Shown here: piece after piece, positions 1,004-29,732 of the stretch | How positions within the stretch are numbered: position 1 is the first letter of the stretch | Layout: each line of letters opens with the position of its first letter | Assembly: GCA_002269645.1 (NCBI GenBank) | Contig: NIVC01000519.1 | Location: 1-50,911, forward strand | DNA: 50,911 nt | Direction: 5' to 3' | DNA from: Macrostomum lignano | Lineage: Eukaryota | Translations under genes and position numbers: made by a program | The notes under the pieces: model-generated | The model's input: the letters and a program-made list of their open reading frames with translations, nothing else | What the model was told of the DNA's origin: nothing | Databases searched by the model: none

Positions 1004-2040
1004 TCAGGTGGAGGTGGCGGCTCGCCCGTCCGTGGGGGCGGAGCCGGCGCAGCGGCAAATCGAACAGTCGTCCTCTTGGTCGGCCGCGCCGTTGTCAGCC
1101 GGTGGGCTGTTGCACTTAACCAGCCGACTCGCTTGCCACTTTGTACCGTCGGACAGCACGAAGGTGTTGCGCCCTGCTGGGGAGGCGATCTTTAGCGGTT
1201 CCTTCAGTCGGGTCGCCAGCTTGTGCGCTCGGTGCGGCGTCTGTCGCCAGACCCAGTCTCCGGCCTGGAGCATAGAGTCACGAGCTCGCCTTCGCTTGTT
1301 GGTGTAGTCGGCATTCTTGGCTTGCCTCTGTGCGATACTGTCTCGCAGGTCGCTGTCGTCCCGCTGTTGCACTGGAGTTGGCCTGAGCAGCTGCAGTCCG
1401 GACCGCAGCTTGCGCCCGATCATCAGCTCGGCTGGAGTCAGCCCGGTGAGAGCGTGCTGGCTGGTCCTGTAGGTCTTGAGCACCAGGTCGATGGCGTCCT
1501 CGAACTTCGCTCCCGCCCTCAGGTTCGCTGCCAGGCCCTCCTTCAGACTCCGGTTGAATCGCTCGACTCCGCCGTTGCCTTGCGGGTAGTACCGGCTCAC
1601 TCGGCTGTGCTTGATGCCCTCGGCTCGCAGGAACTCTTCGAACTCGTCGCTGACGAACTGGGGTCCGTTGTCGCTGATCAGCATCTTCGGGACCCACCGG
1701 CCGAATAGCTTCCGAAGCGTCTTGATGATGTTGGCAGAGGTGACGGTTTCCATGGCTGCAATCTCCGGCCACTTGCTGTACAGGTCGTGGATCACCAGTA
1801 GAAACCGCTGGTGTCGAGGAGCCGCGGCGACCTCGCCGAAGATGTCGATCTCGACCTTGTCCCACGGTCCATCTGGCCACTCGATTGGTGTCACGATCGT
1901 CTGTTGAGGCTTGCCGGACTTCTCCGCCAGAGTGCAGACCGTGCAGTTCTTGACGTAGTCCTCCACCTGCCGGTCAATTCCAGGAAACCAGACCGTGTCG
2001 CGGCACCGCTGCTTTGACCGAACGACCCCGGATGCCCTTC
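1004..2040 (-). pseudogene. Gypsy integrase (frameshifted within the HHCC zinc finger)
   Basis: HEGHPG / CTVC zinc finger. DDE motifs EIDIFG, LISDNGPQF and GGVERFNRSLK are intact. Confidence 0.92.
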
Positions 2041-3336
2041 GTGGGCCTCCTCGATGACTTGAAGTCGCAGGCTCGTCGGAATGATCGCGCGTTCACCACG
2101 ACCGAGGCACTGACCGTTGTTCCAGCAGAACAGCTCGTCTCGGACGTTGAAGTACGGCTTTAGAGAGCTGTCCACCTTCGTTGGCCAGCCGCCCGAGATG
2201 TACCGCAAAACCGCCTGCAGCACTTCGTCCTCCTTGGTCGCCGTTGCCAGTGCGTGCGTCTGCCGTCAGCGTTGTCTTTTGAGTCGACGACCTGCGTAGA
2301 CGTAGCTCCTCTCGTCGGTCTCCTCGGCTGGAACGCACCCCGTCGTGGCCCATCTGGACAGCATGTCGCGCACTTGTTGTCAGCGCCAGGGATGTGCTCA
2401 AACCCATCGATGAGTCTCTCGACCCATCGATGAATGCGAAGAGGCCTGTGCCCCATGCCTTTCGAGTCGAGCAGAGTTGTCAGGGCCTTGTGGTCGTGTG
2501 CGCAGCGTTACTCGTCTGCCGTATAGATAGTAGTGCCAGCGTTCGATGCTCCATACACAGGCCAGGGCTTCTCGCTCTCCGGCTGAGTATCGCTTTTCCG
2601 CTGGGCTGAGTGCTCTCGATGCGAACGCGATTGGCACCTCTTTTTCGTTTTGTACTTGGCTGAGCACTGCCCCCAGTCCGTCTAGACTTGCATCGCAGGT
2701 GACGTACGTCTCAGCTTGGCAGTCAAAATGAGCTAACACTGGGCTGCTGGTTACGGCTGACTTGAGTGTACGGAAGGCTGTACGTTCCCGCTCACCCCAG
2801 TGCCAGTCCGCGTCCTTTTTGAGCAGTTGTCTCAGAGGCTCGGCAATTGCTGAGTAATGCAGTATGAACTTGTGCAAAAAGTTCACTGCCCCGAGAAACG
2901 ATTGAATTTGCGCGACCGTTGATGGCTCAGGAATTCTTAGAATTGCGTCGACGTTGGACTTGGTCGGTTTGATGCCGTCTGCAGAGATGACCAATCCGAA
3001 GAAATCCACGCTCGCCTGCCGGAATTTGCACTTCTCTCGATTGAGTGTGAAGCCTTCGCGATGAATCCGCCCTAGGACTTCTCGGAGGTTCTTGTCGTGC
3101 TCAGTCTCGTCCTTGCCGTGCACCAGGATGTCGTGCACGATGTTGATGGCGCCAGGAGCTCCTCGAAGCACCGTCTGCAGGGCTCGCTGGAAGGCAGCTC
3201 CGGAGCTAGATAGCCGAATGGCACCACGGTGAACTGGTACAGGCCGGCATCGGTGATGAAGCACGTCAGTCCTCGAGAGTCTGGATGCAGCGGAATCTGC
3301 TGGTAGCCTTGACGCAGGTCCAGCTTGCTGAAGCAC
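1891..3336 (-). pseudogene. Gypsy RT C-terminus, RNase H and linker (several frameshifts)
   Basis: NIVHDILVHG (degenerate xDD), FLGAVNF, TCDASLDGLGAVLSQ, PIAFASRAL, YSAGEREALACVW. Spread over ORFs 2398-3336 and 1891-2223. Confidence 0.92.
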
Positions 3337-4277
3337 TTCGAGCCGTTGATGCTGGCCGATAGGTCCTCGATTGACGGTACCGGATAGCGGTCCGCGATCA
3401 CCGCCTTGTTGACCTGCCGCAGATCCACGCAGAGACGAACCTTGTTGGACTCCTTCTTGCGCGTCACGACAACGTTGCTAACCGACTCGGACGCGTCGAC
3501 CTTCTCAATGATGCCCTGTTGCTCCATCCGGCTGATCTCTGACGTCACTTCGTCCTTCAGGCCGATCGGCAGCTTCCGCATTGGCTGAGACACTGGCTTG
3601 ACCGAGGCGTCGATCTTTGTCCGGTGAATGAAGCTCTTGGACCGGCCCAGACCGTCGAAGATTCCGGGGAAGTCGCGCTCGATCGTAGTCTCGCTGATGC
3701 TCATCACTCTGTTGTCACCTTGGAAGATTTTGAATCCGAGGGCCTGAAACAGGTCGCGGCCCAGGATGTTCGCTCCTTTGTCGGCGACGTAGAATGTGGC
3801 TTCTGTCCTGATGCCGTTGAACGTCACTGGAAGCTCGACTTTGCCGATGGTCTTGATCGCAGATCCGCCGTATGCCTTCAGTTTTGTGCTCGTCGGAAGC
3901 AGCGGGTGCCTAGCGAAGGACTTCTTGAACGTCTCCATGTTGAGCAACGAAACGGCAGCACCGCAGTCGATTTGCAGTCGAATCAGCTGTCCGTCCAGAC
4001 GGCATTCGCAGAATAAGCTGTCTGTGCTCTTGTTGTTCACGGCCAGGACCGTCAGGCTGGACTCTGCAGGCTTTTTGGTGTCGATCGCAGAGACCGCTTT
4101 CATGCGGCACATTTTCGCGAAATGGTTCGTCTTGCCGCATCGTCTGCATTTCTGGCCCATCGCCTTGCATTCGCCCTTGTGTCCGTGGTTGCCTCCGCAT
4201 CGAGTGCACTTTGGACCTGCTGCTGCGGTCTTCTCATGGCGAGCAGCTGGCTTCGGCTTCTTGCTCAGCGCCTTCAC
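3072..4277 (-). pseudogene. Gypsy gag C-terminus, aspartic protease and RT N-terminus
   Basis: Cys/His knuckles CTRCGGNHGH and CRRCGKTNHFAKMC; protease LQIDCGAAVSLL and ILGRD; RT motifs VRLCVDLRQVN, KLDLRQGYQQI and PFG. Confidence 0.93.
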
Positions 4278-4313
4278 GTGGAGCTCTGGGCCGCTGACCA
4301 GCCGCTGACGGAG

Positions 4314-4620
4314 AGTCCAGAAGGTGGATAGTCGCTCGCCCGGTAACCCTTAGGTAGTGGACGAACTAGCAAATATTCTCGGGCCGAAAACGTCGGAGAG
4401 GTCCGGGTTTGGGCCGAGGTTGGTGAGCCTGTCCTGGGTAAAGGCGGGGCGTTCCCAGATGAAGTGCCATGACCCCTGATGTCCCTGCGGTCGAGTCCAA
4501 TCAACAAGATTTTAATAGTCGCCAAACTGGCTCGCGACTTGTTATACCGGAACACGTCTGAACCAGTTTGTTGAAATCCACGCCAAATTTTATGATTTGC
4601 TCGCAATAATACAGAGACGG
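4314..4620 (-). mobile_element. 3' remnant of non-LTR retrotransposon ORF2 (I/LOA/R1-like C-terminus)
   Basis: Minus-strand frames give ILLIGLDRRDIRG and HFIWERPAFTQDRLTNLG...LSDVFG, resembling the LINE C-terminal H-x3-C-P-A zinc knuckle region (C changed to R). Confidence 0.55.
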
Positions 4621-5060
4621 GAGGGACAAGTCACAGCGAACTGGGGACTGAGGCTTCGCTAAAATCATGACAAAGGATGAAATAAATTGAAGAAGACTTC
4701 AAATCGTGCTACTAACAGTAGAATGACTGGAAGCAGAAATTCATGAGCGATTATATACGATAAAAGTGCGTCCACAACGCGTTAAGTGAGAGACTAATGT
4801 GCATTCAAGAACGACACAAGTACTTGAGTCTACACGAGTCGTCCTGATTACAGGAAGTACAGTAGGTTGACACTACACCTCAATTATTTTATCGTCAACT
4901 GGCTGGCTCTTCCACTTAGTAAACACAAAGTAAATGAAGCAATTAAAATTCGAGCGCATGTTTTGCCAAAGCGATTTTGGTAGCTTTTAATCTGCTGTCA
5001 TTTTTTTAACACGCCTTCACATAAAATATTTCTTTCGAATTACTCTGACATACAGAGCAG

Positions 5061-5348
5061 TTACAGCTTGATGCAGCTGATGATCTGGATGGCGCTGCCG
5101 CCGCACTTGTTGGCCAGGCAGCCGGCCAGCTGGCTGATGTTGGTGCCGTGGGCGAAGTAGCAGGAGGCCAGGTTGGAGATCAGGCAGTTCACGGAGCTGA
5201 TGCCGTTCTGCTTCAAGCAGTTGGTGTCGATGCTGATCACGGGAACGACCTCGTGAATGATGTCGTTCACGACCTCGTTCTTCTGCTCCGGAGTGTAGGC
5301 GGCGGCGGCGAAGGCCACGAGAGCGAACAGGCAGACGACGTTGTACAT
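5061..5348 (-). CDS. Small secreted six-cysteine protein, 95 aa, copy 1
   Basis: Intronless ORF with strongly GC3-biased codons and GCCATG start context. Signal peptide MYNVVCLFALVAFAAAA; mature Cys at 44, 55, 63, 77, 82, 92. Frame conserved in copy 2. Confidence 0.88.
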   Translation of the reverse strand: MYNVVCLFALVAFAAAAYTPEQKNEVVNDIIHEVVPVISIDTNCLKQNGISSVNCLISNLASCYFAHGTNISQLAGCLANKCGGSAIQIISCIKL

Positions 5349-5407
5349 GGCTGCTGAGCTGGGTGCTTTGGTTGCTGGCTTCTTGAGACTGGCTGCTGGG
5401 TTGAGTT

Positions 5408-5449
5408 GCTGATTGGGTCTCGGGCTCGGTCGCTGGGCTCTCATTTATG
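5408..5449 (-). promoter_or_regulatory. Putative core promoter of peptide gene copy 1
   Basis: Minus-strand CATAAAT (5449-5443) about 30 nt upstream of an Inr-like TCAGC (5412-5408). Conserved in copy 2 (13377-13371). Confidence 0.5.
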
Positions 5450-6351
5450 GTGCGCTTGTGCCGCTGCATTTTGTGATATCTTTGCAGCAGTCAACAGAAG
5501 CAAAAGTGCACTGCATGGGAAATTTCATACTGTCCAACTGCCTGTCAATAGCTGTTAGCTTGAAAATTTCCACGTATGAGCACTTTTTAAGCTCTCACAG
5601 ATAGGGGCTGGCAGTTTACCTAACCAAGCCCGTTGGAACCAGTAGTTTTATCACTGTCGGGACTTGAGGAACTGTCGGTCCGTATATGGGATGTACCAGC
5701 GTATCAGAAGGTATCAATATTTTTTAACGTTGTCGATACAGCATGCGCGCAAGAAAGAGCATTTAAAATATGCAATAACTTCAAACGTCAGAATATTCAG
5801 AGCAAAACGCCAGCTGAAGAATACTGACGCAGCAGGCATCCTACCGGCGCGGACAAACGCATACTTTCGTCGACTGGCCTGCTAGCGAACGCCGGCGCCC
5901 CGCATTCCGTATGCATTGCGGCGGGTTCTGCTACCACCGAAGCCCTGAGACGGGCCCTGTGATGCTGTTAGGACTGTCTAGGTTTGATCCGTCAGCGTAT
6001 TTCGCTGTTGTCGTTGTTACTGAATGACTTTATTGTTGGGTGCTTAGGATCATCTTATTCAAGGTTTATCAATAGTAAAGACCAAAGGCTGGTGTGAGCC
6101 GTCCCCGTGCGCTGCGCGCTCTTGTCAGCCCCGCTGTTCAATGTACTCTCTCTCCCGCCAGCCAACTTAACCCTTCCAACCCCCACCCCATTCAGTTCTT
6201 CTCTCTTCTGCAGCCGATCGGCTTGAGCTTCGGCCCTTCTAGCAATATGTACATCGTATTGCATATCGATCGATCACAATATATAATAGGACGCAAGGCT
6301 AAGTGGAAGCCTGAGCTTTTTCCATTCGCTATTAATTGAGCCTTTACAGCT

Positions 6352-8427
6352 GGGATCATCAGCAACCTTTTAGCAACCCTTGGATCATCAGCAACCTTTT
6401 AGCAACCCTTGGATCATCAGCAACCTTTTAGCAACCCTTGGATCATCAGCAACCTTTTAGCAACCCTTGGATCATCAGCAACCCTTGGATAATCAGCAAC
6501 CCTTGGATCATCAGCAACCCTTGGATCATCAGCAACCCTTGGATCATCAGCAACCCTTGGATCATCAGCAACCCTTGGATCATCAGCAACCCTTGGATCA
6601 TCAGCAACCCTTGGATCATCAGCAACCCTTGGATCATCAGCAACCCTTGGATCATCAGCAACCCTTGGATCATCAGCAACCCTTGGATCATCAGCAACCC
6701 TTGGATCATCAGCAACCCTTGGATCATCAGCAACCCTTGGATCATAAGCAACCCTTGGATCATCAGCAACCCTTGGATCATCAGCAACCCTTGGATCATC
6801 AGCAACCCTTGGATCATCAGCAACCCTTGGATCATCAGCAACCCTTGGATCATCAGCAACCCTTGGATCATCAGCAACCATCAACAATCATCGGCAATAA
6901 TCAACAATCATCAGCAATCATCAGCAATCATCAGCAATCATCAGCAATCATCAGCAATCATCAGCAACCTTTTAGCAACCCTTGGATCATCAGCAATCAT
7001 CAGCAATCATCATCAATCATCAGCAATCATCAGCAATCATCAGCAATCATCAGCAATCATCAACAATCATCAGCAATCATCAGCAATCATCAGCAATCAT
7101 CAGCAATCATCAGCAATCATCAGCAATCATCAGCAATCATCAGCAATCATCAGCAATCATCAGCAATCATCAGCAATCATCAGCAATCATCAACAATCAT
7201 CAGCAATCATCAGCAATCATCAGCAATCATCAGCAATCATCAGCAATCATCAGCAATCATCAGCAACCTTTTAGCAACCCTTGGATCATCAGCAATCATC
7301 AGCAATCATCATCAATCATCAGCAATCATCAGCAATCATCAGCAATCATCAGCAACCTTTTAGCAACCCTTGGATCATCAGCAATCATCAGCAATCATCA
7401 TCAATCATCAGAAATCATCAGCAATCATCAGCAATCATCAACAATCATCAGCAATCATCAACAATCATCAACAATCATCGGCAATCATCAACAATCATCA
7501 ACAATCATCGGCAATCATCAACAATCATCAGCAGTCATCAACAATCATCGGCAATCATCAACAATCATCAACAATCATCAACAATCATCAGCAATCATCA
7601 ACAATCATCAGCAGTCATCAAAAATCATCAGCAATCATCAGCAATCATCAGCAATCATCAGCAATCATCAGCAATCATCATCAATCATCAGCAATCATCA
7701 GCAATCATCAGCAATCATCAACAATCATCAACAATCATCGGCAATCATCAACAATCATCAACAATCATCAGCAGTCATCAAAAATCATCAACAATCATCG
7801 GCAGTCATCAGCAATCATCAGCAATCATCAGCAATCATCAGCAATCATCAGCACTCATCAACAATCATCGGCAATCATCAACAATCATCAACAATCATCA
7901 AAAATCATCAGCAATCATCAGCAATCATCAGCAATCATCAGCAATCATCAGCAATCATCAACAATCATCAGCAATCATCATCGATCATCAGCAATCATCA
8001 GCAATCATCAGCAATCATCAGCAATCATCAGCACTCATCAACAATCATCATCGATCATCAGCAATCATCAGCAATCATCAGCAATCATCAGCACTCATCA
8101 ACAATCATCGGCAATCATCAACAATCATCAACAATCATCAACAATCATCAACAATCATCAACAATCATCGGCAATCATCAACAATCATCAGCAATCATCA
8201 GCAATCATCAGCAATCATCAACAATCATCGGCAATCATCAGCAATCATCAGAAATCATCAGCAATCATCATCGATCATCAAAAATCATCGGCAATCATCA
8301 GCAATCATCAACAATCATCAGCAATCATCATCGATCATCAGCAATCATCAGCAATCATCAGCAATCATCAGCAATCATCAGCAATCATCAGCAATCATCA
8401 GCAATCATCAGAAATCATCAGCAATGA
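6352..8427. repeat. Compound satellite: 18-mer CATCAGCAACCCTTGGAT followed by 10-mer CAGCAATCAT
   Basis: Direct tandem repeats. They account for the long low-complexity ORFs in this interval. Confidence 0.97.
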
Positions 8428-8457
8428 TTAAAAGAAGTTAAAAGTGAGACAATATAT

Positions 8458-8463
8458 TTTATT
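8458..8463 (-). other. Duplicated polyadenylation signal of the CEP76 3'UTR copy
   Basis: AATAAA on minus, equivalent to 16028-16033. Confidence 0.45.
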
Positions 8464-8827
8464 TCATCAGATTTTCTGCCCTAAACTGCATGGCTAAAAA
8501 AACTAAACAATAAGAAAAAAACTAACTGTAACATGTATTTCACAGAAATAGTGGAATATTATATTGAGAAACAAAAGAAAAAATATGAATAAGAAAGAAG
8601 TACTTGAAGAAAAGTACATTTTGTTGCATGAAAAAATGTACTTCTAATTGGTCAGATTCAATTAAACTCGATTAAAAGTCGGATGCTGTTCTGAATTTCT
8701 GCACACAAGTGGCCGGCCCTTCATGTGCAGCAAATCACAACAGATTTAGGTGGATAAATAACATGAGTGAATGAGCAGCTCTACAGATTGTTAGCTGAAC
8801 TCGTAGATCAAGCAGCACATCAAGCAC

Positions 8828-9010
8828 TCACAACGCGGCCTGATAGGTGCAGCCGATCATGAGCCAGGTGGCGCAGGCTGACTCAGCGTAACACACCACC
8901 CGAGCCCGGGCGCACAGCCGCACCCGGTCGCCGCGGCAGAACACCACCTCCCGGCCGACCGGCGACCGGAGAGCAGCGGCCAGGGCCCGGCGCGGGTCCC
9001 GGTGCAGAAC
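8828..9010 (-). pseudogene. CEP76: Second, intact copy of the CEP76 terminal exon
   Basis: Appears identical to 16397-16579: acceptor ccag, VLHRDPRR...CTYQAAL and TGA. Confidence 0.85.
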
Positions 9011-9036
9011 CTGGATTAGGGCGATCGATTAATGGT

Positions 9037-9594
9037 CTAGTCACTCCTGACACATTCCAGTCACTCCTGACACATTTCAGTCACTTTTGACACATTCCAG
9101 TCACTCCTGACACATTCTAGTCACTTCTGACACATTCTAGTCACTTCTGACACATTCCAGTCACTTCTGACACATTCCAGTCACTTCTGACACATTCCAG
9201 TCACTCCTGACACATTCCAGTCACTCCTGACACATTCCAGTTACTCCTGACACATTCTAGTCACTTCTGACACATTCCAGTCACTCCTGGCACATTCTAG
9301 TCACTCCTGACACATTCTAGTCACTTCTGACACATTCCAGTCACTCCTGACATATTCTAGTCACTTCTGACACATTCTAGTCATACCACACCACCTCCCG
9401 GCCGACCGGCGACCGGAGAGCAGCGGCCAGGGCCCGGCGCGGGTCCCGGTGCAGAACCTGGATTAGGGCGATCGATTAATGGTCTAGTCACTCCTGACAC
9501 ATTCCAGTCACTCCTGACACATTCTAATCACTCCTGACACATTGTAGTCACTTCTGACATATTCTAGTCACTCCTGACACATTCCGGTCACTCA
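9037..9594. repeat. 20-mer minisatellite TCACTCCTGACACATTCTAG, split by a partial exon copy
   Basis: Tandem units at 9037-9384 and 9484-9594. Same family as 16606-17335. Confidence 0.95.
9388..9457 (-). pseudogene. CEP76: Third, truncated copy of the CEP76 terminal exon (5' part only)
   Basis: Encodes VLHRDPRRALAAALRSPVGREVV with the acceptor and flanking intron retained. Confidence 0.85.
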
Positions 9595-9597
9595 GTA

Positions 9598-9825
9598 TCA
9601 TCCAGTCCTTTTAGTCCTCCTAGTCATCCTAATCCTTTTAGTCCTCCTAGTCATCCTAATCCTTTTAGTCCTCCTAGTCATCCTAATCCTTTTAGTCCTC
9701 CTAGTCATCCTAATCCTTCTAATCCCTTTAGTCCTCCTAACCCTCCTAATCCTTTTAGTCCTCCTAATCCTCCTAATCCTTCTAGCCCTCCTAGTCCTTC
9801 TAATCATCCCGATCCTCCTAAACCG
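9598..9825. repeat. 27-mer (9-mer based) repeat GTCATCCTAATCCTTTTAGTCCTCCTA
   Basis: Direct tandem repeats. Confidence 0.9.
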
Positions 9826-10114
9826 TGTTGATTTTAGTGGTTTAATAACCGCTTGGCAAGTCTTTTATCTAATTGCCATGAATGGACAAAAGTCTTTATT
9901 TTCAATTGCGTACAGTACTGATTCTTGTACTTTGAGTAGCATGAGCGAATGCTCCTACTTAAATTGCTTGCTTGTCACAGAAAAAAGAACTGCAAGATTT
10001 CAGCTAGCTCGTAATAAAGAGTTTTAAGGCCCAGTGCTTTTTACTGTGTTTTGAGTATAGTAAATAATCAAAATGGGGCAAGGACCCTAGAGCGTTTTCC
10101 TTGAAGCGACAAGC

Positions 10115-10252
10115 TACGACTTCACGTCACTAACCGCACAACAGTATTTGTCTCTCGTGTCGCAGACGGCATGACAGAAATACTACGACTTCACGTCACT
10201 AACCGCACAACAGTATTTGTCTCTCGTGTCGCAGAGGGCATGACAGAAATAC
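10115..10252. repeat. 69-bp tandem duplication (2 copies)
   Basis: TACGACTTCACGTCACTAACCGCAC starts at 10115 and again at 10184. Confidence 0.9.
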
Positions 10253-11043
10253 ATCTGCTGCAGCTGCAGTGAGCTGAAGAAGAAGAATACTGAGAAGAAA
10301 ACAGTTGAGAGTAGGCCGTCTCACATCTGCATTTGTTTAGACGCTGCAGACTCGTAAAACTCAATGCGAGTCCGTAGCAGCTAGCAAAAAAACTGCCCTC
10401 TGGCCTTCGATTCTTCTTAACTCCTGCAAGCAGCGTGAGACCTGTCTAGCTATCCAGGGCCCTTCACCAATTCCAAAACCAAATAGCAACAAGATAAAAA
10501 CAAAAAAATTGCACTGGGTGTTTAGCAGCAACGCTACAAAAGTATACTTCGCCGTAGACGACAGCTTACGTGCTCCGAACAAAATCGAGGATATAATACG
10601 TGCTCGGAACAACATCAAGGATATAATATTGACAACAACTGGACAAAATCAGAGTGGGACTACGTGTTGCAACACTTTCTAATGGAGCTTAGGAAGCCAA
10701 ATGAAAACGGGGGCACTGATACCAATTAAAGAATTCCGTTGTCTATGCTAGCGGAGATAAGCTACTGATAGTATCCGCAAGTTTTATCACTAGGGAATAG
10801 ACAAGGCGAACAGGCAGAGTGAGTTACACGACAATACGCTCGTAATCCAGCTCACAGCAATACTCGTAATTTAAAATTTGGTTGCTATGTATACATGAAA
10901 CTATTTGTGCAACGTTTTCCAACGAGCTTCAAACTGTTTTCTGTTACACCTGCAGAAGAGGTTGCTAATCGTAAACACCTACCGGTACATGTAGATAAAC
11001 CAGTCGTTGCAGAGACCCAGTTCCCTTATAAAAGCGGCTGGGT

Positions 11044-11703
11044 TTACAAGCGAGTTATGCGTCCCGGTTCGCCGGCGGCTGTTTCCCTGCTTGAATCGGC
11101 CGCTTCTTCTGAACTGGCGGCAGGCACAACGGCTGAAGTCGGCTGTCTAGGTAAAGTGCCTGGCGGCGAGCCTGAGCTGGCCTCGGTGGAGGTGCGATTA
11201 AGGTGGGTAGAAATCTCTCCGTCGTTGCTCAGAACTGTCTGACGCAGAACGGTTGACCGGCCCAGGCCGCTGTCGATCGCCCGCCTCAGGTTCTGTCTCC
11301 GAAGCTGAACGTTGTTCGCATGCACGCCCTCTCGCGTGGCCTCCGCAAAAATCACTTCCAGCCTCTCCATCGGGATCTTCTTTCCACCAGAGAGATCAAG
11401 AAAGCGCCGCATGCCGAACTCTACGACCTCAGTTGAAGCGCCTGCATTTCTCAGGCCGATTTCCAGCTCAGCCAGCATGAACAGCATGCGCAGGCAGACG
11501 TGCGGATACCCGTTGGTGGTCCGACAAATGCTGATGTACTTGATGTCCTCCTTCCGGTTCAGAAGATCCCTCAGGCCGGTTACCTCCTGCTCATTGAGGA
11601 AGGTGTTCATTGCAGTTTCTGACTGCTCGGCATTGGCGCTAATTAGCGAGCTGCACTTCACTGCCAGCTGAGTATCATTCCTGATCTCGGGAGCACTGGC
11701 CAT
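11044..11703 (-). CDS. Orphan 219-aa ORF; predicted helical N-terminal region and Ser/Pro/Ala-rich tail
   Basis: Non-repetitive, GC-rich 660-nt ORF with GACATGG start context in AT-richer flanks. No family recognised with certainty. Confidence 0.55.
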   Translation of the reverse strand: MASAPEIRNDTQLAVKCSSLISANAEQSETAMNTFLNEQEVTGLRDLLNRKEDIKYISICRTTNGYPHVCLRMLFMLAELEIGLRNAGASTEVVEFGMRRFLDLSGGKKIPMERLEVIFAEATREGVHANNVQLRRQNLRRAIDSGLGRSTVLRQTVLSNDGEISTHLNRTSTEASSGSPPGTLPRQPTSAVVPAASSEEAADSSRETAAGEPGRITRL

Positions 11704-12168
11704 GTCGGTAGTTACCCACTATTTGCTCAGTAAATTGAAGCCTGTATCTGCCACAACCATATAGCAATGGTGTGCAAAGGAGCGCTCGGGAAGCGCAACT
11801 GATCTGAAGTGGCCGCAAGTGTCTACAGACTCCTGCATACTCTTTTATTATGCCTTCCAGCGTGTACAACAGGTACGTATTTATTCTTATTGCTTTCTCC
11901 GAGGATAGTTGGAAAATTTTTTTCTTCCATTGCATTGCTTGTTGAGTAGCATCCGTCATGTCAGCTTATATGAGGGTGAGGGTGTGCAAACGCATTACCC
12001 CTGCCCTGAACATCTACTGCCGCAAGAGAATGGGTTCGTTGCTCAAATATTTCTTCTTTTCTCTACACTGGATGCTTAGCAGTTGCATTTGTTTTTGCAA
12101 GAAACAGATTTATTTAGCATATTGCACATGGGTACACAGTAGAGCAAAATAGCTGAGCGGTAAACGCG

Positions 12169-12560
12169 TCAGGCTCTATCGCCGCGACCCTGTTCGATTT
12201 TAGAGCAATTTGGGGCAGCGCGGCCCCCCTCCGGAGAGTCCAGAAGGTGGATGGTCGCTCGCCCGGTAACTCTTAGGTAGCGGACGAGCTGGCAAATATT
12301 CTCGGGCCCGAAAACGTCGGAGAGGTCCGGGTTTGGGCCGAGGTTGGTGAGCCTGTCCTGGGTAAAGGCGGGGCGTTCCAGATGAAGTGCCATGACCCCT
12401 GATGTCCCTGCGGTCGAGTCCAATCAACAAGATTTTAATAGTCGCCAAGCTGGCTCGCGACTTGTTATACCGGAACACGTCAATTGCGATTGGCTGAACC
12501 AGTTTGTTGAAATCCAGGCCAAATTTTATGATTTGCTCGCAATACAGAGACGGGAGGGAC
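12169..12560 (-). mobile_element. 3' remnant of non-LTR retrotransposon ORF2, uninterrupted copy
   Basis: Paralog of 1-67 plus 4314-4620; reads LERPAFTQDRLTNLGPNPDLSDVFGPENICQLVRYLRVTG. Confidence 0.55.
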
Positions 12561-12987
12561 AAGTCGCAGCGGACTGGGGACTGAGGCTTCGCTAAAATCA
12601 TGACAAAGGATCAAATAAATTGAAGAAGACTTCAAATCGTGCTACTAACAGTAGAATGATTGGAAGCAGAAATTCATGAGCGATTATATCCGATAAAAGT
12701 GCGTCCACAACGCGTTAAGTGAGAGACTAATGTGCATTCAAGAACGACACAAGTACTTCAGTCTATACGAGTCGTCCTGATTACAGGAAGTACAGTAAGT
12801 TGACACTCTACACCTCAATTATTTTATCGTCAACACTTCCACTTGGTAAACACAAAGTAAATGAAGCAATTAAAATTCGATCGCATGTTTTGCCAAAGCG
12901 ATTTTGGTAGCTTTTAATCTGCTGTCATTTTTTTAACGCGCCCTCAGATAAAATATTTTTCTCGCATTACTTTGACATGCAGAGCAT

Positions 12988-13275
12988 TTACAGCTTGATG
13001 CAGCTGATGATCTGGATGGCGCTGCCGCCGCACTTGTTGGCCAGGCAGCCGGCCAGCTGGCTGATGTTGGTGCCGTGGGCGAAGTAGCAGGAGGCAACGT
13101 TTGAGATCAGGCAGTTCACGGAGTCGATGCCGTTCTGCAGCAGGCAGTTGGTGTCGATGCTGATCACGGGAACGACCTCGTGAATGATGTCGTTCACGAC
13201 CTCGTTCTTCTGCTCCGGAGTGTAGGCGGCGGCGGCGAAGGCCACGAGAGCGAACAGACAGACGAGCTTGTACAT
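12988..13275 (-). CDS. Small secreted six-cysteine protein, 95 aa, copy 2
   Basis: Paralog of 5061-5348 with 5 amino-acid differences; signal peptide and all six mature Cys retained. Confidence 0.88.
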   Translation of the reverse strand: MYKLVCLFALVAFAAAAYTPEQKNEVVNDIIHEVVPVISIDTNCLLQNGIDSVNCLISNVASCYFAHGTNISQLAGCLANKCGGSAIQIISCIKL

Positions 13276-13841
13276 GGCTGCTGAGCTGGGTGCTTTGGTT
13301 GCTGGCTTCTTGAGACTGGCTGCTGGGTTGAGTTGCTGATTGGGTCTCGGGGCTCGGTCGCTGGGCTCTCATTTATGGTGCCGCTGGTGCCGCTGCAGGT
13401 GACGCGGTCTCGGACTGTCACGCCGCTCACGGCCTGTCAGAGCTGTCAAAAGCCGTTATCGATATTTTCTTCTGTACCAATTGATTTTGTTTCAATCAAT
13501 TTTGCGATATCTTTGCAGCAGTCAACAGAAGCAAAAGTGCACTGCATGGGAAATTTCATACTGTCCAACTGCCTGTCAATAGCTGTTAGCTTGAAAATTT
13601 CCACGTATGAGCACTTTTTAAGCTCTCACAGATAGGGGCTGGCAGTTTACCTAACCAAGCCCGTTGGAACCAGTAGTTTTATCACTGTCGGGACTTGAGG
13701 AACTGTCGGTCCGTATATGGGATGTACCAGCGTATCAGAAGGTATCAATATTTTTTAACGTTGTCGATACAGCATGCGCGCAAGAAAGAGCATTTAAAAT
13801 ATGCAATAACTTCAAACGTCAGAATATTCAGAGCAAAATGC

Positions 13842-14163
13842 CAGCTGAAGAATATTGACGCAGCAGGCATCCTACCGGCGCGGACAACAGCTGAAGAATA
13901 CTGACGCAGCAGGCATCCTACCGGCGCGGACAACAGCTGAAGAATACTGACGCAGCAGGCATCCTACCGGCGCGGACAACAGCTGAAGAATACTGACGCA
14001 GCAGGCATCCTACCGGCGCGGACAACAGCTGAAGAATACTGACGCAGCAGGCATCCTACCGGCGCGGACAACAGCTGAAGAATACTGACGCAGCAGGCAT
14101 CCTACCGGCGCGGACAACAGCTGAAGAATACTGACGCAGCAGGCATCCTACCGGCGCGGACAA
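13842..14163. repeat. 46-bp VNTR, 7 copies
   Basis: Unit CAGCTGAAGAATACTGACGCAGCAGGCATCCTACCGGCGCGGACAA starts at 13842, 13888 ... 14118. A single copy occupies the paralogous site near 5812. Confidence 0.97.
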
Positions 14164-14659
14164 ACGCATACTTTCGTCGACTGGCCTGCTAGCGAACGCC
14201 GGCGCCCCGCATTCCGTATGCATTGCGGCGGGTTCTGCTACCACCGAAGCCCTGAGACGGGCCCTGTGATGCTGTTAGGACTGTCTAGGTTTGATCCGTC
14301 AGCGTATTTCGCTGTTGTCGTTGTTACTGAATGACTTTATTGTTGGGTGCTTAGGATCATCTTATTCAAGGTTTATCAATAGTAAAGACCAAAGGCTGGT
14401 GTGAGCCGTCCCCGTGCGCTGCGCGCTCTTGTCAGCCCCGCTGTTCAATGTACTCTCTCTCCCGCTAGCCAACTTAACCCTTCCAACCCCCACCCCATTC
14501 AGTTCTTCTCTCTTCTGCAGCCAATCGGCTTGAGCTTCGGCCCTTCTAGCAATATGTACATCGTATTGCAAATCGATCAACCACAATATATAATAGCACG
14601 CAAGGCTAAGTGGAAGCCTGAGCTTTTTCCATTCGCTATTAATTGAGCCTTTACAGCTG

Positions 14660-15997
14660 GGATCATCAGCAACCTTTTAGCAACCCTTGGATCATCAGCA
14701 ACCTTTTAGCAACCCTTGGATCATCAGCAACCCTTGGATAATCAGCAACCCTTGGATCATCAGCAACCCTTGGATCATCAGCAACCCTTGGATCATCAGC
14801 AACCTTTCAGCAACCCTTGGATCATCAGCAACCCTTGGATCATCAGCAACCCTTGGATCATCAGCAACCCTTGGATCATCAGCAACCCTTGGATCATCAG
14901 CAACCTTTCAGCAACCCTTGGATCATCAGCAACCCTTGGATCATCAGCAACCCTTGGATCATCAGCAACCCTTGGATCATCAGCAACCCTTGGATCATCA
15001 GCAATCATCAGCAATCATCATCGATCATCAGCAATCATCATCGATCATCAGCAATCATCAGCAATCATCAGCAATCATCAGCACTCATCAACAATCATCG
15101 GCAATCATCAACAATCATCAACAATCATCAGCAATCATCAGCAATCATCAGCAATCATCAGCAATCATCAGCAATCATCAGCACTCATCAACAATCATCG
15201 GCAATCATCAACAATCATCAACAATCATCAACAATCATCAGCAATCATCAACAATCATCAGCAATCATCAACAATCATCAACAATCATCAACAATCATCA
15301 ACAATCATCGGCAATCATCAACAATCATCAACAATCATCGGCAATCATCAACAATCATCAAAAATCATCAGCAGTCATCAGCAATCATCAGCAATCATCA
15401 GCAATCATCATCAATCATCAGCAATCATCAACAATCATCAACAATCATCAGCAATCATCAACAATCATCAACAATCATCAACAATCATCAGCAATCATCA
15501 ACAATCATCAACAATCATCAACAATCATCAACAATCATCAACAATCATCAACAATCATCAGCAATCATCAGCACTCATCAACAATCATCGGCAATCATCA
15601 GCAATCATCAACAATCATCAACAATCATCAACAATCATCAGCAATCATCAGCAATCATCAACAATCATCAACAATCATCAGCAATCATCAGCAATCATCA
15701 ACAATCATCAACAATCATCAGCAATCATCAACAATCATCAACAATCATCAACAATCATCAGCAATCATCAACAATCATCAACAATCATCAACAATCATCA
15801 ACAATCATCAACAATCATCAACAATCATCAGCAATCATCAGCACTCATCAACAATCATCGGCAATCATCAGCAATCATCAACAATCATCAGCAATCATCA
15901 TCGATCATCAGCAATCATCAGCAATCATCAGCAATCATCAGCAATCATCAGCAATCATCAGCAATCATCAGCAATCATCAGAAATCATCAGCAATGA
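14660..15997. repeat. Compound 18-mer/10-mer satellite, second copy
   Basis: Same units as 6352-8427, shorter array. Confidence 0.97.
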
Positions 15998-16027
15998 TTA
16001 AAAGAAGTTAAAAGTGAGACAATATAT

Positions 16028-16033
16028 TTTATT
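16028..16033 (-). other. Probable CEP76 polyadenylation signal
   Basis: AATAAA on minus about 365 nt downstream of the stop codon, just before the satellite. Confidence 0.55.
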
Positions 16034-16396
16034 TCATCAGATCTTCTGCCCTAAACTGCATGGCTAAAAAAACTAAACAATAAGAAAAAACTAACTGTAA
16101 CATGTATTTTACAGAAATAGTGGAATATTATATTGAGAAACAATAGAAAAAATATGAATAAGAAAGGAGTACTTGAAGAAAAGTACATTTTGTTGCATGA
16201 AAAAATGTACTTCTAATTGGTCAGATTCAATTAAACTCGATTAAAAGTCGGATGCTGTTCTGAATTTCTGCACACAAGTGGCCGGCCCTTCATGTGCAGC
16301 AAATCACAACAGATTTAGGTGGATAAATAACATGAGTGAATGAGCAGCTCTACAGATTGTTAGCTGAACTCGTAGATCAAGCAGCACATCAAGCAC

Positions 16397-16579
16397 TCAC
16401 AACGCGGCCTGATAGGTGCAGCCGATCATGAGCCAGGTGGCGCAGGCTGACTCAGCGTAACACACCACCCGAGCCCGGGCGCACAGCCGCACCCGGTCGC
16501 CGCGGCAGAACACCACCTCCCGGCCGACCGGCGACCGGAGAGCAGCGGCCAGGGCCCGGCGCGGGTCCCGGTGCAGAAC
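16397..16579 (-). CDS. CEP76: CEP76 exon 5 (terminal)
   Basis: Acceptor ccag|gttctg; 60 codons plus TGA; matches the CEP76 C-terminus. Confidence 0.92.
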   Translation of the reverse strand, partial: VLHRDPRRALAAALRSPVGREVVFCRGDRVRLCARARVVCYAESACATWLMIGCTYQAAL

Positions 16580-19500
16580 CTGGATTAGGGCGATCGATTA
16601 ATGGTCTAGTCACTCCTGACACATTCCAGTCACTCCTGACACATTCTAGTCACTTCTGACACATTCTAGTCACTCCTGACACATTCCAGTCACTCCTGAC
16701 ACATTCTAGTCAGTCCTGACAATTCATTCTAGTCACTCCTGACACATTCTAGTCAGTCCTGACACATTCTAATTACTCTTGACAATTCATACTAGTCAGT
16801 CCTGACAATTCATTCTAGTCACTCCTGACACATTCTAGTCAGTCCTGACACATTCTAATTACTCTTGACAATTCATACTAGTCAGTCCTGACATATTCTA
16901 GTCACTCCTGACACAGTTTAGTCTCCTAACACATTATAGTCACTCTTTACACATTCTAGTCAGTGACACATTCTAGTCCCTACTGACACATTCTAGTCAC
17001 TCCTGGCAATTCAATCTAGACAGTCCTGACATATTCTAGTCACTCCTGACACATTCTAGTCACTTCTGACACATTCCAGTCACTCCTGGCACATTCTAGT
17101 CACTTCTGACACATTCTAGTCACTTCTGACACATTCTAGTCACTTCTGACACATTCCAGTCACTTCTGACACATTCCAGTCACTTCTGACACATTCTAGT
17201 CACTTCTGACACATTCCAGTCACTCTTGACACATTCCAGTCACTCCTGGCAATTCAATCTAGACAGTCCTGACATATTCTAGTCACTCCTGACACATTCT
17301 AGTCACTTCTGATACATTCTAAAAACTCCTGACACATAAATAGATAAATATGGACACACATTTTCGGCGGCAAAAGCGAGCCCGAACGCACCTGCAGCGG
17401 GTAGCCCCGGAAGGTGTGCCCGTCTGGCACCAGACGATTCATAGCGGCCTGGAATTCCTCGTTGGCGAAGGCGACTCCGTGCAGGCGTTCCTGTTCGTAG
17501 CCGGCCAGGGCGCCCGTCAGGCAGAAGCTGAGCTCTTCGTCCCACTGCGTGGCGCCCAGACCGTCGGCTTCGCGCCGTTCGGCCACCGCGGCGCGCAGGC
17601 GCAGCTCGAATTGGTTTGACTCGCGCACCGCGTCCAATAGCGGGGCGCTCAGCGTTGCTAAGCAACCGGGCGGCGTCGGACCGCCAGTCAAAGCCGCCCC
17701 GATCGCCTCCTCGCTCATCGGCTTCCATCTGGCGGAATCGTCCAAGTCGAAGCGGCAGGAGGCGACCGCGTCGCTGGCCTGATTGTTGGCGTAGAATGAC
17801 CGGTGATTGAACAGGCAGCCGATGCGGGTGTAGGGATGCTGCGACTGCTGCTGACCGCTGAAATTTGAATACTAGTTTTAGAATTTTTATTCTAATTTTT
17901 AGTTTTAGAAGTTTAGGCTCACGCGTCGACTGCCGTCAGAGTCGCGTCCGAGTACAGCAGGTCCGACCTCGCCAGCGAGTACACCAGCTGGCAGCAGATC
18001 ACCAATTCAGTAGTATCAATTGGTATCCACAGTATAAGTAGGTCTACTTATAACTGGACTCCCGAAACTCCGACTTATCCCACGCTGTTCTCCAGAAGTT
18101 TCCGTTCCTGTAGAGCTACCGCTTTGTTTGTGTAAGGCGCTTACAAATGACAACCCGCTGTTAAATATAGAGATGCTACTCATAAAATCTTCTTTACTTC
18201 TTTTTTTCTTCGCTTCTTTACTGCGAAATTTGATGTCAATGCCTTCCGGATTTTTTTGCATGAATTACCCGACTGTTAGCTGGTCAGCGAATCCTGTTTG
18301 CCAGACAGGATAACAAACAAGATAACAAACAGGATGACACAATGTTTCCCTGCAGGATTCGCATGAATTACCCGACTGTTAGCTGGTCAGCGAATCCTAT
18401 TTGAATCTTGTTTGAAACAAGGAAACGTAAGATTTCGTCACGCAAACAGGATTCATACAAGATAACATTTTGCATAACCGGAATGGGGCATGTTATCTTG
18501 TTTGAGCGAATGTTATCTTGTGGTGTTATCTGGTTTATTTACCAGAGTGATTAAGAGCCAACTATTCAATAATTAAGAGCTGCAGTCGGCTGAAAGCGCC
18601 ATCCTACCTGTGCAAAAAGCGCTGCCCATTGACGGGGTCCCAAAAGTGCACAGAAGCCGGTTCGGCCGAACTGCCCAGCTGGCTGAGCGTCACCACCCAG
18701 GCCACCGGGCTGCCGGAGGCCGCGTTAGCACCAGAGCTGGAAGCCGGGGCTTTGGCGCCGAACGCCACGTAGGCGTCGAGGCCGAAGCCCAACAGCAGCG
18801 AGCAGAGCAGGGCGGCGTGGTCGCCGGTGTCGCCGCGGCCCCTGGCCAAGAAAGCGTGCCGGCTGCACCACATGTCGGCCAGGCCGCAGCCCAGCGCAGC
18901 CGCCCGCTCGTACTGCAGGCAGGCGACGAATCTGGCGGCGTGCCGCGGCGACTCGATGAGGCGGCCGGCGCGCAGCGGCTTGACCAGTTCGAAGACCGGG
19001 CGGTCCCGGCCGCACTCGTCTTTGGCGAATATCTTCACTAGGCGGTCGGCGTTGGCCGCGCGAGCGGCGCAGTACTCGCTCCACCACTGGCTGGCGTAGA
19101 GCACAAATAGGCGCTCGGAGTTCTCGCGCCTGCCGCGCTCCATGGCCAGCTGCTGCTGCACTAGATCCGGGCTGAACCTGTCAATCTGGGTTTGGATAAT
19201 CAGCGACTAACTTATGCATATTCTCTTAGGAACCAACTTCCCAGACCTTAGCAACCAAATTCACAGATCTTAGCAACCAACTTCCCAGATTCTTAGCAAC
19301 CAACTCTTCAGATCCTTCAGAAATTATTTTCCCGTGATTCACTTAGCAACCAACTCTCTGGCCAGATCCCCTTAGCAACCAACTCTCTTGCCAGATCCCC
19401 TTAGCAACCGCAACCAACTCTTTGGCGAGATCACCTTAGCAACCAACTCTCTGGCCAGATCTCTTAAGCAACCAACTCGCTAGCCAGATCGCCTTAGCAA

Positions 19501-21670: not shown

Positions 21671-23143
21671 ATTTAGTTTTTCGATTTCAGTGAGAAGACA
21701 ACCGAAATTAATGCACAATGATGAAGTATTTTTTTTATAAAACTACGAACAAGTGACTGTGGCAAAAGCAATAAAAGTTCAGTTTCAGGATTTAATGAAC
21801 CGGAACTCTTATTTATCTATTATTAAGGATAGCCCTATTCGAGCAAAAAGACGCAAGCAGCCGGCGCAATTCTTGTATACTTTTATTGTGCCTTCAAAAA
21901 AGCTCTCTTCGTTTCCAATATTGAAATAGATCTATTTTCATTAGAACCGATTTTAGTATAACAACAAGGGTAAAACTGATATAATGATATTGATACAATA
22001 GTCTTTAAATTTCTAGTGACACATTTAGATTATATATGTTTCTTTATATTTAAGATATCTTAAATATATATTTAAGCCAATCTATACTTCAATTAAATTT
22101 TAAGCCGCTGGTGGTAACCTTTTGATTGCGCAACAAAGAATATTTCACGAAAGGTGATCTTCATAATTCATGGTTCCTAAAAGCCTCTGGCAATGTTTTT
22201 GTAATAATATCTGAAGACATCTTATTTTTATTGCATGTCAAGATAACTATAAAAAGTATATGACACTCATGGAAAGAAGTGCATATCATGATTTGTTCGG
22301 TATGTTATATAGGGCACCGCGGGCACAGATTCAATTTTGGATACTAATAACTCAAATGGAAACAAAGGTATTGCAATTTCAATATAGTATTTTGTTCGTC
22401 TCAACCTGAAGAAAGATACGTGTACATCTACATGTACTTCGTATCTTTATGCTGAGAATTTGATAGTACGCTCGTACCATATGCAAAACTTAATGCTATT
22501 TGAGTCTTTTGTAGTTAATATTTGGCCATATCGAGTGTTCAAAACCTGAGATGCACTAACTATAGAATACTTTCAAACCAGACATATTATGAGCAGCAAA
22601 ATAGATCAGTGGCATCCATGTGCTGCTGTAACAACGCTTTCAACGACTGAAAACTAAAAATCCCAATATATGGCGAATTCGCCTTGAAACTCTGGTGCTA
22701 AATGTAAAAGCAGCCTCGACTAAGCCGCTTCCCGCGAGCTGTAGGTAATCCACGCAAGTGCTTGATGGCGAAAGAGACTCTTATGGGGATCGTATTACAC
22801 AAACCACAGCCGAGGAAATGACTGGTCAGAGAAAGAGATCGGCGTGTCTAAGCGGATTTCGCATCGCAGACACTGCAGATGATTTCTCGCCGGCCTGGGA
22901 AAAAGGAAACGCCCCATTCTGATCAGAGTATATTTTCAGATGGAGGCCGAACTGGCAAAGCGGCTGACACTCCACTGGCGGCTTGACTTGGTGTCATGCC
23001 GCGTTGAGGTATAAAAGACAATCGATTCTTTTTACGAGTGCTGCTCGCACTTTCTGCTGACCCGAGAAGGCCGTGGGCTGCACAACGATAGTGATTTCGA
23101 ATTCAAGGTAGGACAGACAAAGCTGGCAGTCTGATGCAATTGC

Positions 23144-23983
<840 letters not shown>

Positions 23984-24289
23984 ATGACTATGTGAAACGT
24001 GGGACGCATATGTAACGTGATTAAAATGACAGAAAACAAAAGCTAACATCAATAGAGAGCTAGCGGAATTAAGTGACCGTGAAAGGAGAAGTGAGACAGA
24101 CGTCATGCTGCAGAGAACTGTCGTTCCAAATTTGACATTTTATTCGTATACGAGATAAAGCCCTGTCGCTGTGACCTGTGCAAACACCCTCACGGTCAAC
24201 GCGGTTTCAGCTTTGCTTTTACATCTGTTCTACCTTCTTCCTTCCTCTTTCTTCCTGACTAATGCGACCAGAACTGTCTGCCCTAGTGG

Positions 24290-29593: not shown

Positions 29594-29687
29594 ATGAGCA
29601 GTCCGGGCTCCATCGACGCCGAGCGAGGCCGCCAGCTGTACCAGATGATGGAGGACCTAGGCATCGATCAGTGCAGCGGAGGCGGCA

Positions 29688-29732
<45 letters not shown>

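Follow-up and report, generated by a model that had tools for sequence, protein, structure and literature searches.

A tandem pair of predicted secreted six-cysteine peptide genes in Macrostomum lignano and the lineage-restricted family to which it belongs

Small, lineage-restricted secreted cysteine-rich proteins are the seat of much species-specific biology, such as defence, mating conflict and adhesion, and they are systematically recorded as "hypothetical" or mislabelled by automatic annotation. Two short genes of the flatworm Macrostomum lignano raise this problem: do they belong to a known family, such as the saposins whose name some of their relatives carry, and what would their products do? 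The genes lie in a 50,911-nucleotide stretch of DNA (the window; contig NIVC01000519.1 of assembly GCA_002269645.1, positions 1 to 50,911, forward strand). The original prediction, made from the letters alone, had presented them as a candidate for an undescribed system; they proved to be uncharacterized but not unannotated, as copy 2 is a GenBank gene for a hypothetical protein. Here, the pair, which arose by recent tandem duplication, is assigned to a new family in a familiar category, that of lineage-specific, tandemly amplified, fast-evolving secreted cysteine-rich peptides. The automatic saposin label was found to be unsupported, the product was defined as 95 residues long, and a putative promoter module was recognized together with its natural deletion in copy 1.

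A six-cysteine family and its relation to known peptide families

Two intronless genes of 95 codons plus a stop were present as predicted, at 5061..5348 (copy 1) and 12988..13275 (copy 2), and translation placed both on the minus strand. Each is a single exon; the open reading frame (ORF) of copy 1 is intact, and copy 2 corresponds to a 95-residue GenBank protein. A plus-strand reading of the two intervals was rejected, since it offers no start codon and in copy 2 also contains a stop. The copy 1 protein (MYNVVCLFALVAFAAAAYTPEQKNEVVNDIIHEVVPVISIDTNCLKQNGISSVNCLISNLASCYFAHGTNISQLAGCLANKCGGSAIQIISCIKL; minus-strand translation, 95 residues from methionine to stop) differs from that of copy 2 at 5 of 95 residues (N3K, V4L, K46L, S51D and L60V). 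The GC content of the coding sequences (CDSs) is 0.59 to 0.60, against 0.45 to 0.48 in the flanks. Ten intact copies of 95 to 96 codons were found across the window and four other loci, all with the six cysteines invariant; within the window, tblastn detected no further family copies, intact or degenerate. The ORFs are not chance products, given the GC contrast, the ten intact copies and a CDS free of indels next to an indel-bearing 3' flank.

The protein falls into three parts. Residues 1 to 17 (5298..5348 in copy 1, MYNVVCLFALVAFAAAA followed by Y; 13225..13275 in copy 2; both minus strand) form a predicted signal peptide with an n-region of MYN or MYK, a 14-residue hydrophobic core (mean Kyte-Doolittle value 2.4) and a putative AAA/Y cleavage site with small residues at -3 and -1; in the family alignment, a signal peptide of this type occurs in all subfamilies and members. 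Residues 18 to 35 (5244..5297 in copy 1, YTPEQKNEVVNDIIHEVV; 13171..13224 in copy 2; both minus strand) form an acidic segment of charge -3, here called the N-segment, in which hydrophobic residues at i, i+1, i+4, i+5, i+8 and i+9 across residues 20 to 35 give an amphipathic pattern. Both the signal peptide and the amphipathic segment had been anticipated from the sequence. The N-segment may be a pro- or sorting region, and subfamily D lacks it. Residues 36 to 95 (5064..5243 in copy 1 and 12991..13170 in copy 2, minus strand) make up a hydrophobic, predicted helical domain that is hypervariable between its six cysteines, with a grand average of hydropathy (GRAVY) of +0.6, a net charge of about 0 to +2 and few charged residues. 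The mature protein has an isoelectric point (pI) of 4.9 to 6.0.

Cysteines stand at positions 6 (within the signal peptide), 44, 55, 63, 77, 82 and 92, so that the C-x10-C-x7-C-x13-C-x4-C-x9-C pattern described for the pair is exact in both copies. The N70-I-S glycosylation sequon that was also described is present in both window copies and in other A-type paralogues, and the Logan homologue P0004 carries NLT; the sequon is missing from subfamilies B (Mlig013012 type), C and D and from P0007 and thus does not define the family. The C-terminal CIKL was considered as a CaaX prenylation box and rejected, since the protein would enter the endoplasmic reticulum (ER), C92 is a scaffold cysteine and subfamily D ends in CLKKP.

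An AlphaFold2 model of the full-length protein was confident for residues 35 to 95 only, with low confidence in the N-segment. The model of the domain (residues 33 to 95, nine-sequence alignment) reached a predicted local distance difference test score (pLDDT) of 83.4 and a predicted template modelling score (pTM) of 0.66, and contained four helices, at residues 42 to 47, 53 to 67, 71 to 82 and 86 to 92, together with a small two-residue bridge between the N- and C-terminal ends. In this model, helix 2 carries C55 and C63, and helix 3 carries C77 and C82. Geometrically, the two central helices could plausibly form a stapled hairpin, with the ends of the domain joined by C44-C92.

An exhaustive HMMER search with a family hidden Markov model (HMM) against 1.84 billion representative proteins returned five matches at E ≤ 0.001, and profile searches of 5.8 billion proteins returned eight clusters, with no new members when the cysteine domain alone was used. 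The cluster listings assign at least 26 GenBank accessions, with some 20 Mlig locus names between them, to the family, and all organism-named members are from M. lignano. One further homologue, with 67% identity, came from Logan assemblies of the runs SRR31628394 and SRR31628425, on contigs that appear to be genomic and without introns and that keep the promoter module. The family has thus been found so far only in what appears to be Macrostomum, that is, M. lignano and one Logan sample. A tRNA-like sequence (GGTTAGCACGG...GGGTTCGAATCCC) was observed at the end of one of the Logan contigs (L001, ~1125-1179), possibly a tRNA gene or a short interspersed element. Four subfamilies were distinguished: the A type (001791, 020553, 018888 and others), 013012, 029556 and 019425/026862. 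In full-length alignments, members are 37 to 96% identical to copy 1 (E of 1e-52 to 5e-9), with subfamilies dropping to ~37 to 45%. The family signature consists of the signal peptide, invariant P36, D41 and G49, the 10/7/13/4/9 cysteine framework and a C-terminal C-[IL]-K, and both window proteins fit it.

Automatic annotation in UniProt/UniRef names three members (P0005, P0007 and P0026) "Saposin B-type domain-containing protein", a name presumably derived from PROSITE profile PS50015. This name, the six cysteines, the all-helical prediction and the hydrophobic domain (the GRAVY value given above) would fit a divergent, miniaturized saposin-like protein (SAPLIP) acting as a lipid-binding or membrane-perturbing saposin, and flatworms possess many true SAPLIPs. 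The direct tests argued against it. Among 15 members, Pfam gave no SapB_1, SapB_2 or other relevant match at E ≤ 10. A saposin profile built from six SAPLIPs recovered all saposin, NK-lysin, amoebapore, SP-B, granulysin and AOAH entries of the PDB, with E-values down to 1e-30, whereas hhalign of the family profile against it gave a probability of 0.09%. With HMMER filters off, family members scored -1.8 to +0.9 bits against the saposin HMM, no better than shuffles with fixed cysteines (0.6 ± 1.8). The cysteines span 49 residues with gaps of 10/7/13/4/9, compared with ~74 residues and ~3/27/10/24/5 in an alignment of the six SAPLIPs; on this spacing, the two frameworks are irreconcilable unless most of two helices were deleted. 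Saposin domains, of ~75 to 80 residues, fold as a bundle of four to five helices with nested C1-C6, C2-C5 and C3-C4 disulfides. The domain model has four short helices, and SAPLIPs were absent among its 31 best PDB matches in Foldseek, a method that is weak on 60-residue helical proteins. Saposin membership was thus not supported, in keeping with the judgement of the original prediction, and a miniaturized SAPLIP is quite unlikely.

No other characterized family emerged. The family profile had no match at E ≤ 10 among PDB sequences, and Foldseek found none for the domain model at E ≤ 0.001 in the PDB or the viral fold library BFVD; the best matches, at E of ~1, were generic three-helix bundles. 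Thus, a hit to a well-characterized family, which would have told against the novelty of the pair, was obtained neither from Pfam nor from PDB profile searches nor at significance from Foldseek. Defensins (CS-alpha/beta, beta-defensin and big defensin) were rejected on the basis of the prediction, helical save for the two-residue bridge, the pI and the lack of a Pfam match. The CHH/ITP/MIH hormones and insulin-like peptides were rejected on the basis of the absent CC pair, the different spacing and the lack of a Pfam, PDB sequence or fold match. Rfam and tRNA scans likewise returned nothing.

Promoter, transcripts and the length of the product

The original prediction had assigned each gene a TATA/initiator-type promoter. 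A TATA-like box, CATAAAT, was found in both copies, at 5443..5449 in copy 1 (minus strand, 95 to 101 nt upstream of the ATG) and, by promoter alignment, at 13371..13377 in copy 2 (minus strand). It is kept in 6 of 7 aligned promoters, including that of a more divergent genome. Its distance from the ATG is 95 to 103 nt in the two window copies, three of the four copies of locus L003 and the Logan contigs; at the corresponding position, the distant subfamily C carries TATAAAA. The "partial" GenBank models start 9 to 40 nt downstream of the box. Thus, the TATA part of the assignment stood, and both TATA-directed initiation and an initiator are plausible.

About 25 nt upstream of the box, copy 2 carries the element CGTCACCTGC (13395..13404, minus strand), which resembles a cyclic AMP response element (CRE) half-site fused to an E-box. 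The consensus CGTCA[C/G]CTGC occurs in 7 of 10 promoters at -120 to -140, some 25 to 35 nt upstream of CATAAAT. It is shared by the contigs of the more divergent Logan genome (L001 and L002) and by the subfamily C locus L005 (~45% amino acid identity), where the flanking sequence is unalignable. The CRE/E-box-like element and the TATA box therefore appear to form a promoter module conserved across subfamilies. In copy 1, a 102-bp segment corresponding to 13398..13499 of copy 2 (minus strand) has been cleanly deleted, as seen in the upstream alignment and the self-BLAST break points. The deletion junction, at 5468/5469, removed the CGTCACC part of the conserved element CGTCACCTG and left the TATA box in place. 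This deletion and the missing gene model suggest that copy 1 may have little or no expression. Downstream of the CDSs, motif matching placed a putative poly(A) signal, ATTAAA, at 4986..4991 in copy 1, starting 70 nt past the stop, and at 12913..12918 in copy 2, also 70 nt past the stop (both minus strand).

The exact 95-residue product of copy 2 is an annotated NCBI record on this contig (P0017). The copy 1 product, in either a 95- or a 127-residue version, is absent from the protein records, and copy 1 has no gene model. As reported previously, the Mlig_3_7 GenBank annotation rests solely on transcripts obtained from RNA-seq (StringTie/TACO and a de novo transcriptome), with ORFs called by TransDecoder and repeat-overlapping transcripts removed (PMC5730564). 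An annotated family member therefore has transcript support, and there is evidence of expression at least for the family and for copy 2. Silence of both copies, an outcome that would have told against the pair, is not what this RNA-seq-derived annotation indicates.

Many GenBank paralogues are modelled as 127 residues, with a 32-residue N-terminal extension (MRAQRPSPRPNQQLNPAASLKKPATKAPSSAA). This longer product was rejected on several grounds. The ATG that opens the extension shares bases with the CATAAAT box and would be a spurious start, the 127-residue models thereby including the box itself; in copy 2, a 1-nt indel puts this ATG out of frame. The extension is absent from the Mlig013012-type copy, and the Logan homologue has a different upstream ATG. 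In addition, the extension is hydrophilic and would bury the signal peptide. The extension is thus 5' untranslated region, and the true product is 95 residues long.

Other irregular models were also noted. An eight-residue deletion in P0003 was rejected as a natural variant, since its genomic locus (L007, contig NIVC01001252.1) encodes the full 95 residues, identical to copy 2, and the gene span of 384 nt (10001-10384) is longer than its 119-residue product needs; the gap is a gene-model artefact. P0009 (979 residues) and P0024 (2915 residues) are chimeric models that fuse a family member to unrelated genes. Alternative-frame arginine-rich ORFs at 5017-5469 (150 residues) and 12944-13372 (142 residues), both on the minus strand, were rejected as well: they overlap the CDSs, lack conservation from one copy to the other and result from coding sequence rich in GC at third codon positions (GC3).

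Duplication, divergence and surroundings

As the original prediction had claimed, the pair lies in a tandem duplication: self-BLAST showed a direct repeat of ~7.9 kb spanning the two genes. Positions 4309-5468 match 12232-13397 at 94%, positions 5468-5856 match 13499-13887 at 99%, and the satellite-rich blocks up to 9383 and 17337 also match, at ~90%. From self-BLAST and Tandem Repeats Finder, duplication unit 1 (4309..9383) comprises the 3' flank, the gene, the promoter and satellites of 18 bp (6372-6879), 10 bp (6867-8425) and 20 bp (9039-9383). Unit 2 (12232..17337) has its parts in the same order plus a 46-bp, seven-unit array at 13842-14163, and has a colinear counterpart in NIVC01001252.1. 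The units of this array are 99% identical and lie upstream of copy 2, and a single unit occupies the corresponding place of copy 1 (~5811-5856).

The two copies diverge unevenly. The CDSs differ by 3.8% mismatches with no gap events and the 3' flanks by 3.6% with six gap events, and the leader with the 388-bp upstream block differs by only 0.8% with three gap events. Among the copies collected, the N-terminal variants (MYNVV or MYKLV) and the domain variants (K46/S51 or L46/D51) occur in all four combinations. This mosaic divergence, together with the four combinations, suggests exchange between paralogues by gene conversion or unequal crossing-over.

Clusters recur elsewhere: L003 holds four intact copies and a C-terminal fragment within 15 kb, and L006 mirrors L003. 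One copy in L006 (5715-5997) has its halves (residues 1 to 44 and 52 to 95) 19 nt apart instead of 21, and the resulting frameshift marks either a pseudogene or an error of assembly. Window positions 12167-24620 have a colinear counterpart, 95 to 98% identical, in contig NIVC01001252.1 (L007). Because this contig holds only the equivalent of copy 2, the copy 1 block is a structural difference between homologous contigs of a redundant, recently polyploid genome. The M. lignano assembly is known to be redundant (PMC5730564).

Evolutionary rates were estimated pairwise by the Nei-Gojobori method, with the protein split into residues 1 to 37 (signal peptide and N-segment) and 38 to 95 (cysteine domain). 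For the whole CDS, the ratio of nonsynonymous to synonymous rates (dN/dS) was 0.3 to 0.7 within subfamily A and ~0.8 to 1.3 between A and B. For residues 1 to 37, it was 0.48 between A and B and 0.21 to 0.24 between A or B and the Logan homologue. For residues 38 to 95, it was 1.16 (A versus B), 0.95 (A versus Logan) and 0.61 (B versus Logan). Nonsynonymous differences were concentrated in the cysteine domain (Fisher p = 2e-4, 0.034 and 0.0012), and the six cysteines, P36, D41 and G49 were invariant across the family. Thus, the signal peptide and N-segment are under purifying selection, and the cysteine domain changes at a nearly neutral rate around its invariant cysteines. Given this invariant scaffold, positive selection on the domain is suggested but not demonstrated. 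A conserved prepro region joined to a hypervariable mature part with a cysteine framework is a recognized feature of toxin and antimicrobial-peptide superfamilies and also occurs in some reproductive proteins.

These data bear on whether the copies work at all. One or both could be non-functional relics, copy 1 could be a dead duplicate, or the tandem could be an assembly artefact. Such a reading could draw on the promoter deletion and missing gene model of copy 1, on a CDS divergence equal to that of the 3' flank, on the single copy in L007, on the frameshifted copy in L006 and on the redundancy of the assembly (PMC5730564). However, ten copies are intact with invariant cysteines, including those of the more divergent genome (synonymous divergence of 0.3 to 0.5), the N-terminal part is constrained, the indels fall in the flank and not in the CDS, and copy 2 has a transcript-derived annotation. 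In addition, the window copies are ~4 to 6% apart, hence no artefact of collapsed or duplicated reads, and the clusters in L003 and L006 are likewise tandem. A relic or artefact is thus very improbable.

The surroundings are rich in repeats. The satellites at 6372-9383 and 14679-17337 amount to ~3 kb per peptide gene and lie 1 to 4 kb upstream of each; their units are (AGCAACCCTTGGATCATC)n, (ATCATCAGCA)n with 100 to 156 units and (AGTCACTCCTGACACATTCC)n, they lie within the duplicated unit, and they are also present in L007. Apparent ORFs in the satellites at 6.4 to 8.4 kb and 14.7 to 16 kb were rejected as non-coding, since the 10-bp period gives long spurious ORFs. The ORFs between the copies (11044-11703 and 12200-12601) and a neighbouring 121-residue gene in L003 and L006 had no family match. 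On the far side of copy 1, positions 1004-4277 (minus strand) hold the pol region of a Ty3/gypsy-type long terminal repeat retrotransposon (zinc knuckle, aspartic protease, reverse transcriptase, RNase H and integrase) spread over three ORFs, accompanied by an inverted repeat (140-395/524-778). Duplication unit 1 ends distally where this element has its edge (~4308), and the insertion may set the apparent boundary of the duplication.

Beyond unit 2, a CEP76-like exon was found at ~17300-20100 (minus strand; for example, ORF 18604-19161 with a CEP76 peptidase-like domain, E = 4e-20). A CEP76-like gene adjoins the peptide gene in L007 too, so this neighbourhood is conserved between the homologous contigs. 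Positions 20000-50911 consist mostly of tandem arrays: (ATAG)n at 23144-23982, a 14-bp CT-rich unit at 25925-27069, (GTTA)n at 30773-31879, a 34-bp unit at 32596-34384, a 28-bp unit at 34648-35335, units of 12, 40 and 80 bp at 35987-37734, (GGGAGA)n at 47923-48497 and (GAGGA)n at 49210-50911. An ankyrin-repeat ORF lies at 29594-30151 (plus strand).

Possible functions and comparison with known systems

The products are probably lineage-restricted secreted extracellular effectors. In the proposed scheme, a compact intronless gene (CRE/E-box-like element, CATAAAT, a leader of ~65 to 100 nt, a 288-nt CDS and ATTAAA 70 nt past the stop) would yield a 95-residue pre-protein that would enter the ER co-translationally and lose its 17-residue signal peptide by cleavage after A17. 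A protein of ~8.3 kDa would then be secreted, made up of the acidic amphipathic N-segment and the 60-residue hydrophobic, low-charge domain. The domain would fold as four short helices, with three disulfides formed by oxidation. The N-segment would serve sorting, folding or masking, and the variable hydrophobic domain would bind an external, fast-changing or lipidic target. The family would grow through tandem duplication and sequence exchange, with the signal peptide and N-segment kept constant and the surface of the cysteine domain changing.

Within the effector reading, our first choice, although a tentative one, is a defence or digestive peptide that acts on membranes or lipids and comes from a gland or epithelium. 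Hydrophobic residues make up half of the 60 domain residues. This exceeds what a small core can bury and suggests that the domain binds lipids, membranes or a hydrophobic ligand, or associates with itself.

A reproductive secretion is nearly as likely. Here, the proteins would come from the prostate or seminal fluid, the female tract or the cement gland and act on the partner, and sexual conflict would drive the evolution of the cysteine domain. The family is small-sized in its products, predicted to be secreted, multicopy, fast-evolving and lineage-restricted, as expected from such a role. An in situ screen of M. lignano found 76 prostate-limited transcripts, of which 31 had no BLAST hit and 38 of 65 had signal peptides; many of these secreted transcripts are without homologues, and their sequences were not given (PMC5977470). 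Reproduction-related genes of Macrostomum evolve fast, according to two further studies (PMC7336406 and PMC8662610). On the other hand, no link of the family to any prostate-, testis- or tail-limited transcript could be established, and the same sequence features would suit immune or digestive effectors equally. This reading, too, is tentative.

Alternatively, the proteins could be water-borne or contact pheromone-like signals, or structural components of mucus, rhabdites or adhesive secretions. Their general design resembles that of the ciliate Er pheromones and of Aplysia attractin, and hydrophobic surfaces might make them self-assemble in mucus or rhabdites. However, the PDB searches returned no such protein by sequence or by fold, secreted structural proteins tend to be larger or repetitive, and dozens of near-identical copies are rare for pheromone ligands. 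A signalling or structural role is thus rather unlikely.

Several observations weigh against the effector reading itself. Typical antimicrobial peptides are cationic, whereas the mature protein here is neutral to acidic, and no dibasic or other recognizable processing site was found between the N-segment and the domain. The disulfide pairing cannot be read from the AlphaFold model. In the cysteine domain, nonsynonymous and synonymous rates are not significantly different (Fisher p of 0.2 to 0.8), so relaxed constraint is possible. At the transcript level, several GenBank models reach upstream of the CATAAAT box, which leaves the transcription start unsettled, and the annotation alone cannot assign RNA-seq reads among near-identical copies. 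Codon bias was dropped as a sign of very high expression, since GC3 in the copies (0.92 to 0.95) is just slightly above that of unrelated M. lignano exons of the window (0.82 to 0.88). In the literature searched, tissue, proteomic or functional data were found for no member and the family locus names were not mentioned; the gene identifiers and sequence words did not occur in the supplements of the M. lignano expression papers searched.

A bolder version of the effector reading is that the domain represents a new disulfide-stapled four-helix fold, distinct from saposins, within a flatworm effector superfamily that combines a conserved prepro region with a diversifying mature domain; we regard this as speculative. 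If true, free-living flatworms would gain their first described superfamily of peptides that resemble toxins or antimicrobials or that manipulate the partner, and the compact, conserved gland-type promoter module (CRE/E-box plus TATA) would be exploitable in M. lignano transgenesis. Since transgenesis, RNA interference and in situ methods work in M. lignano, experiments can ask directly whether the domain has a new helical disulfide fold and whether the genes can mark or drive a secretory cell type. Should the domain prove to be under positive selection, the family would also make it practicable to study how effectors diversify in a flatworm that regenerates.

In comparison with known systems, the predicted family proteins are similar to SAPLIPs (saposins A to D, NK-lysin, amoebapores and surfactant protein B), which are secreted, of ~60 to 80 residues and all-helical, with six cysteines forming three disulfides and with hydrophobic amphipathic helices. 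They differ in that C2/C3 and C4/C5 of the family sit pairwise on two central helices in the model, and not on helices 1 and 4. A resemblance that serves only as a lead links the family to small secreted signalling proteins, namely the Euplotes Er pheromones, Aplysia attractin and the crustacean CHH/ITP hormones, which are of similar size, form helical bundles with three disulfides and are released into the medium or body fluid. Their cysteine frameworks are different, however; they show no PDB sequence or fold match to the family, and they are encoded by single-copy genes or allelic series instead of large tandem families. The toxin and antimicrobial-peptide superfamilies (conotoxins, defensins and the precursors of amphibian antimicrobial peptides) share neither sequence nor fold with the Macrostomum family, whose domain is predicted to be helical, hydrophobic and about neutral and not beta-rich or cationic; the family also has no recognizable propeptide cleavage site, and positive selection is not demonstrated. 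M. lignano is not known to be venomous. In their mode of evolution, however, these superfamilies are similar to the Macrostomum family: a conserved signal peptide and acidic N-terminal segment are combined with an invariant cysteine scaffold and near-neutral or faster change elsewhere, and the genes multiply in tandem with exchange between copies.

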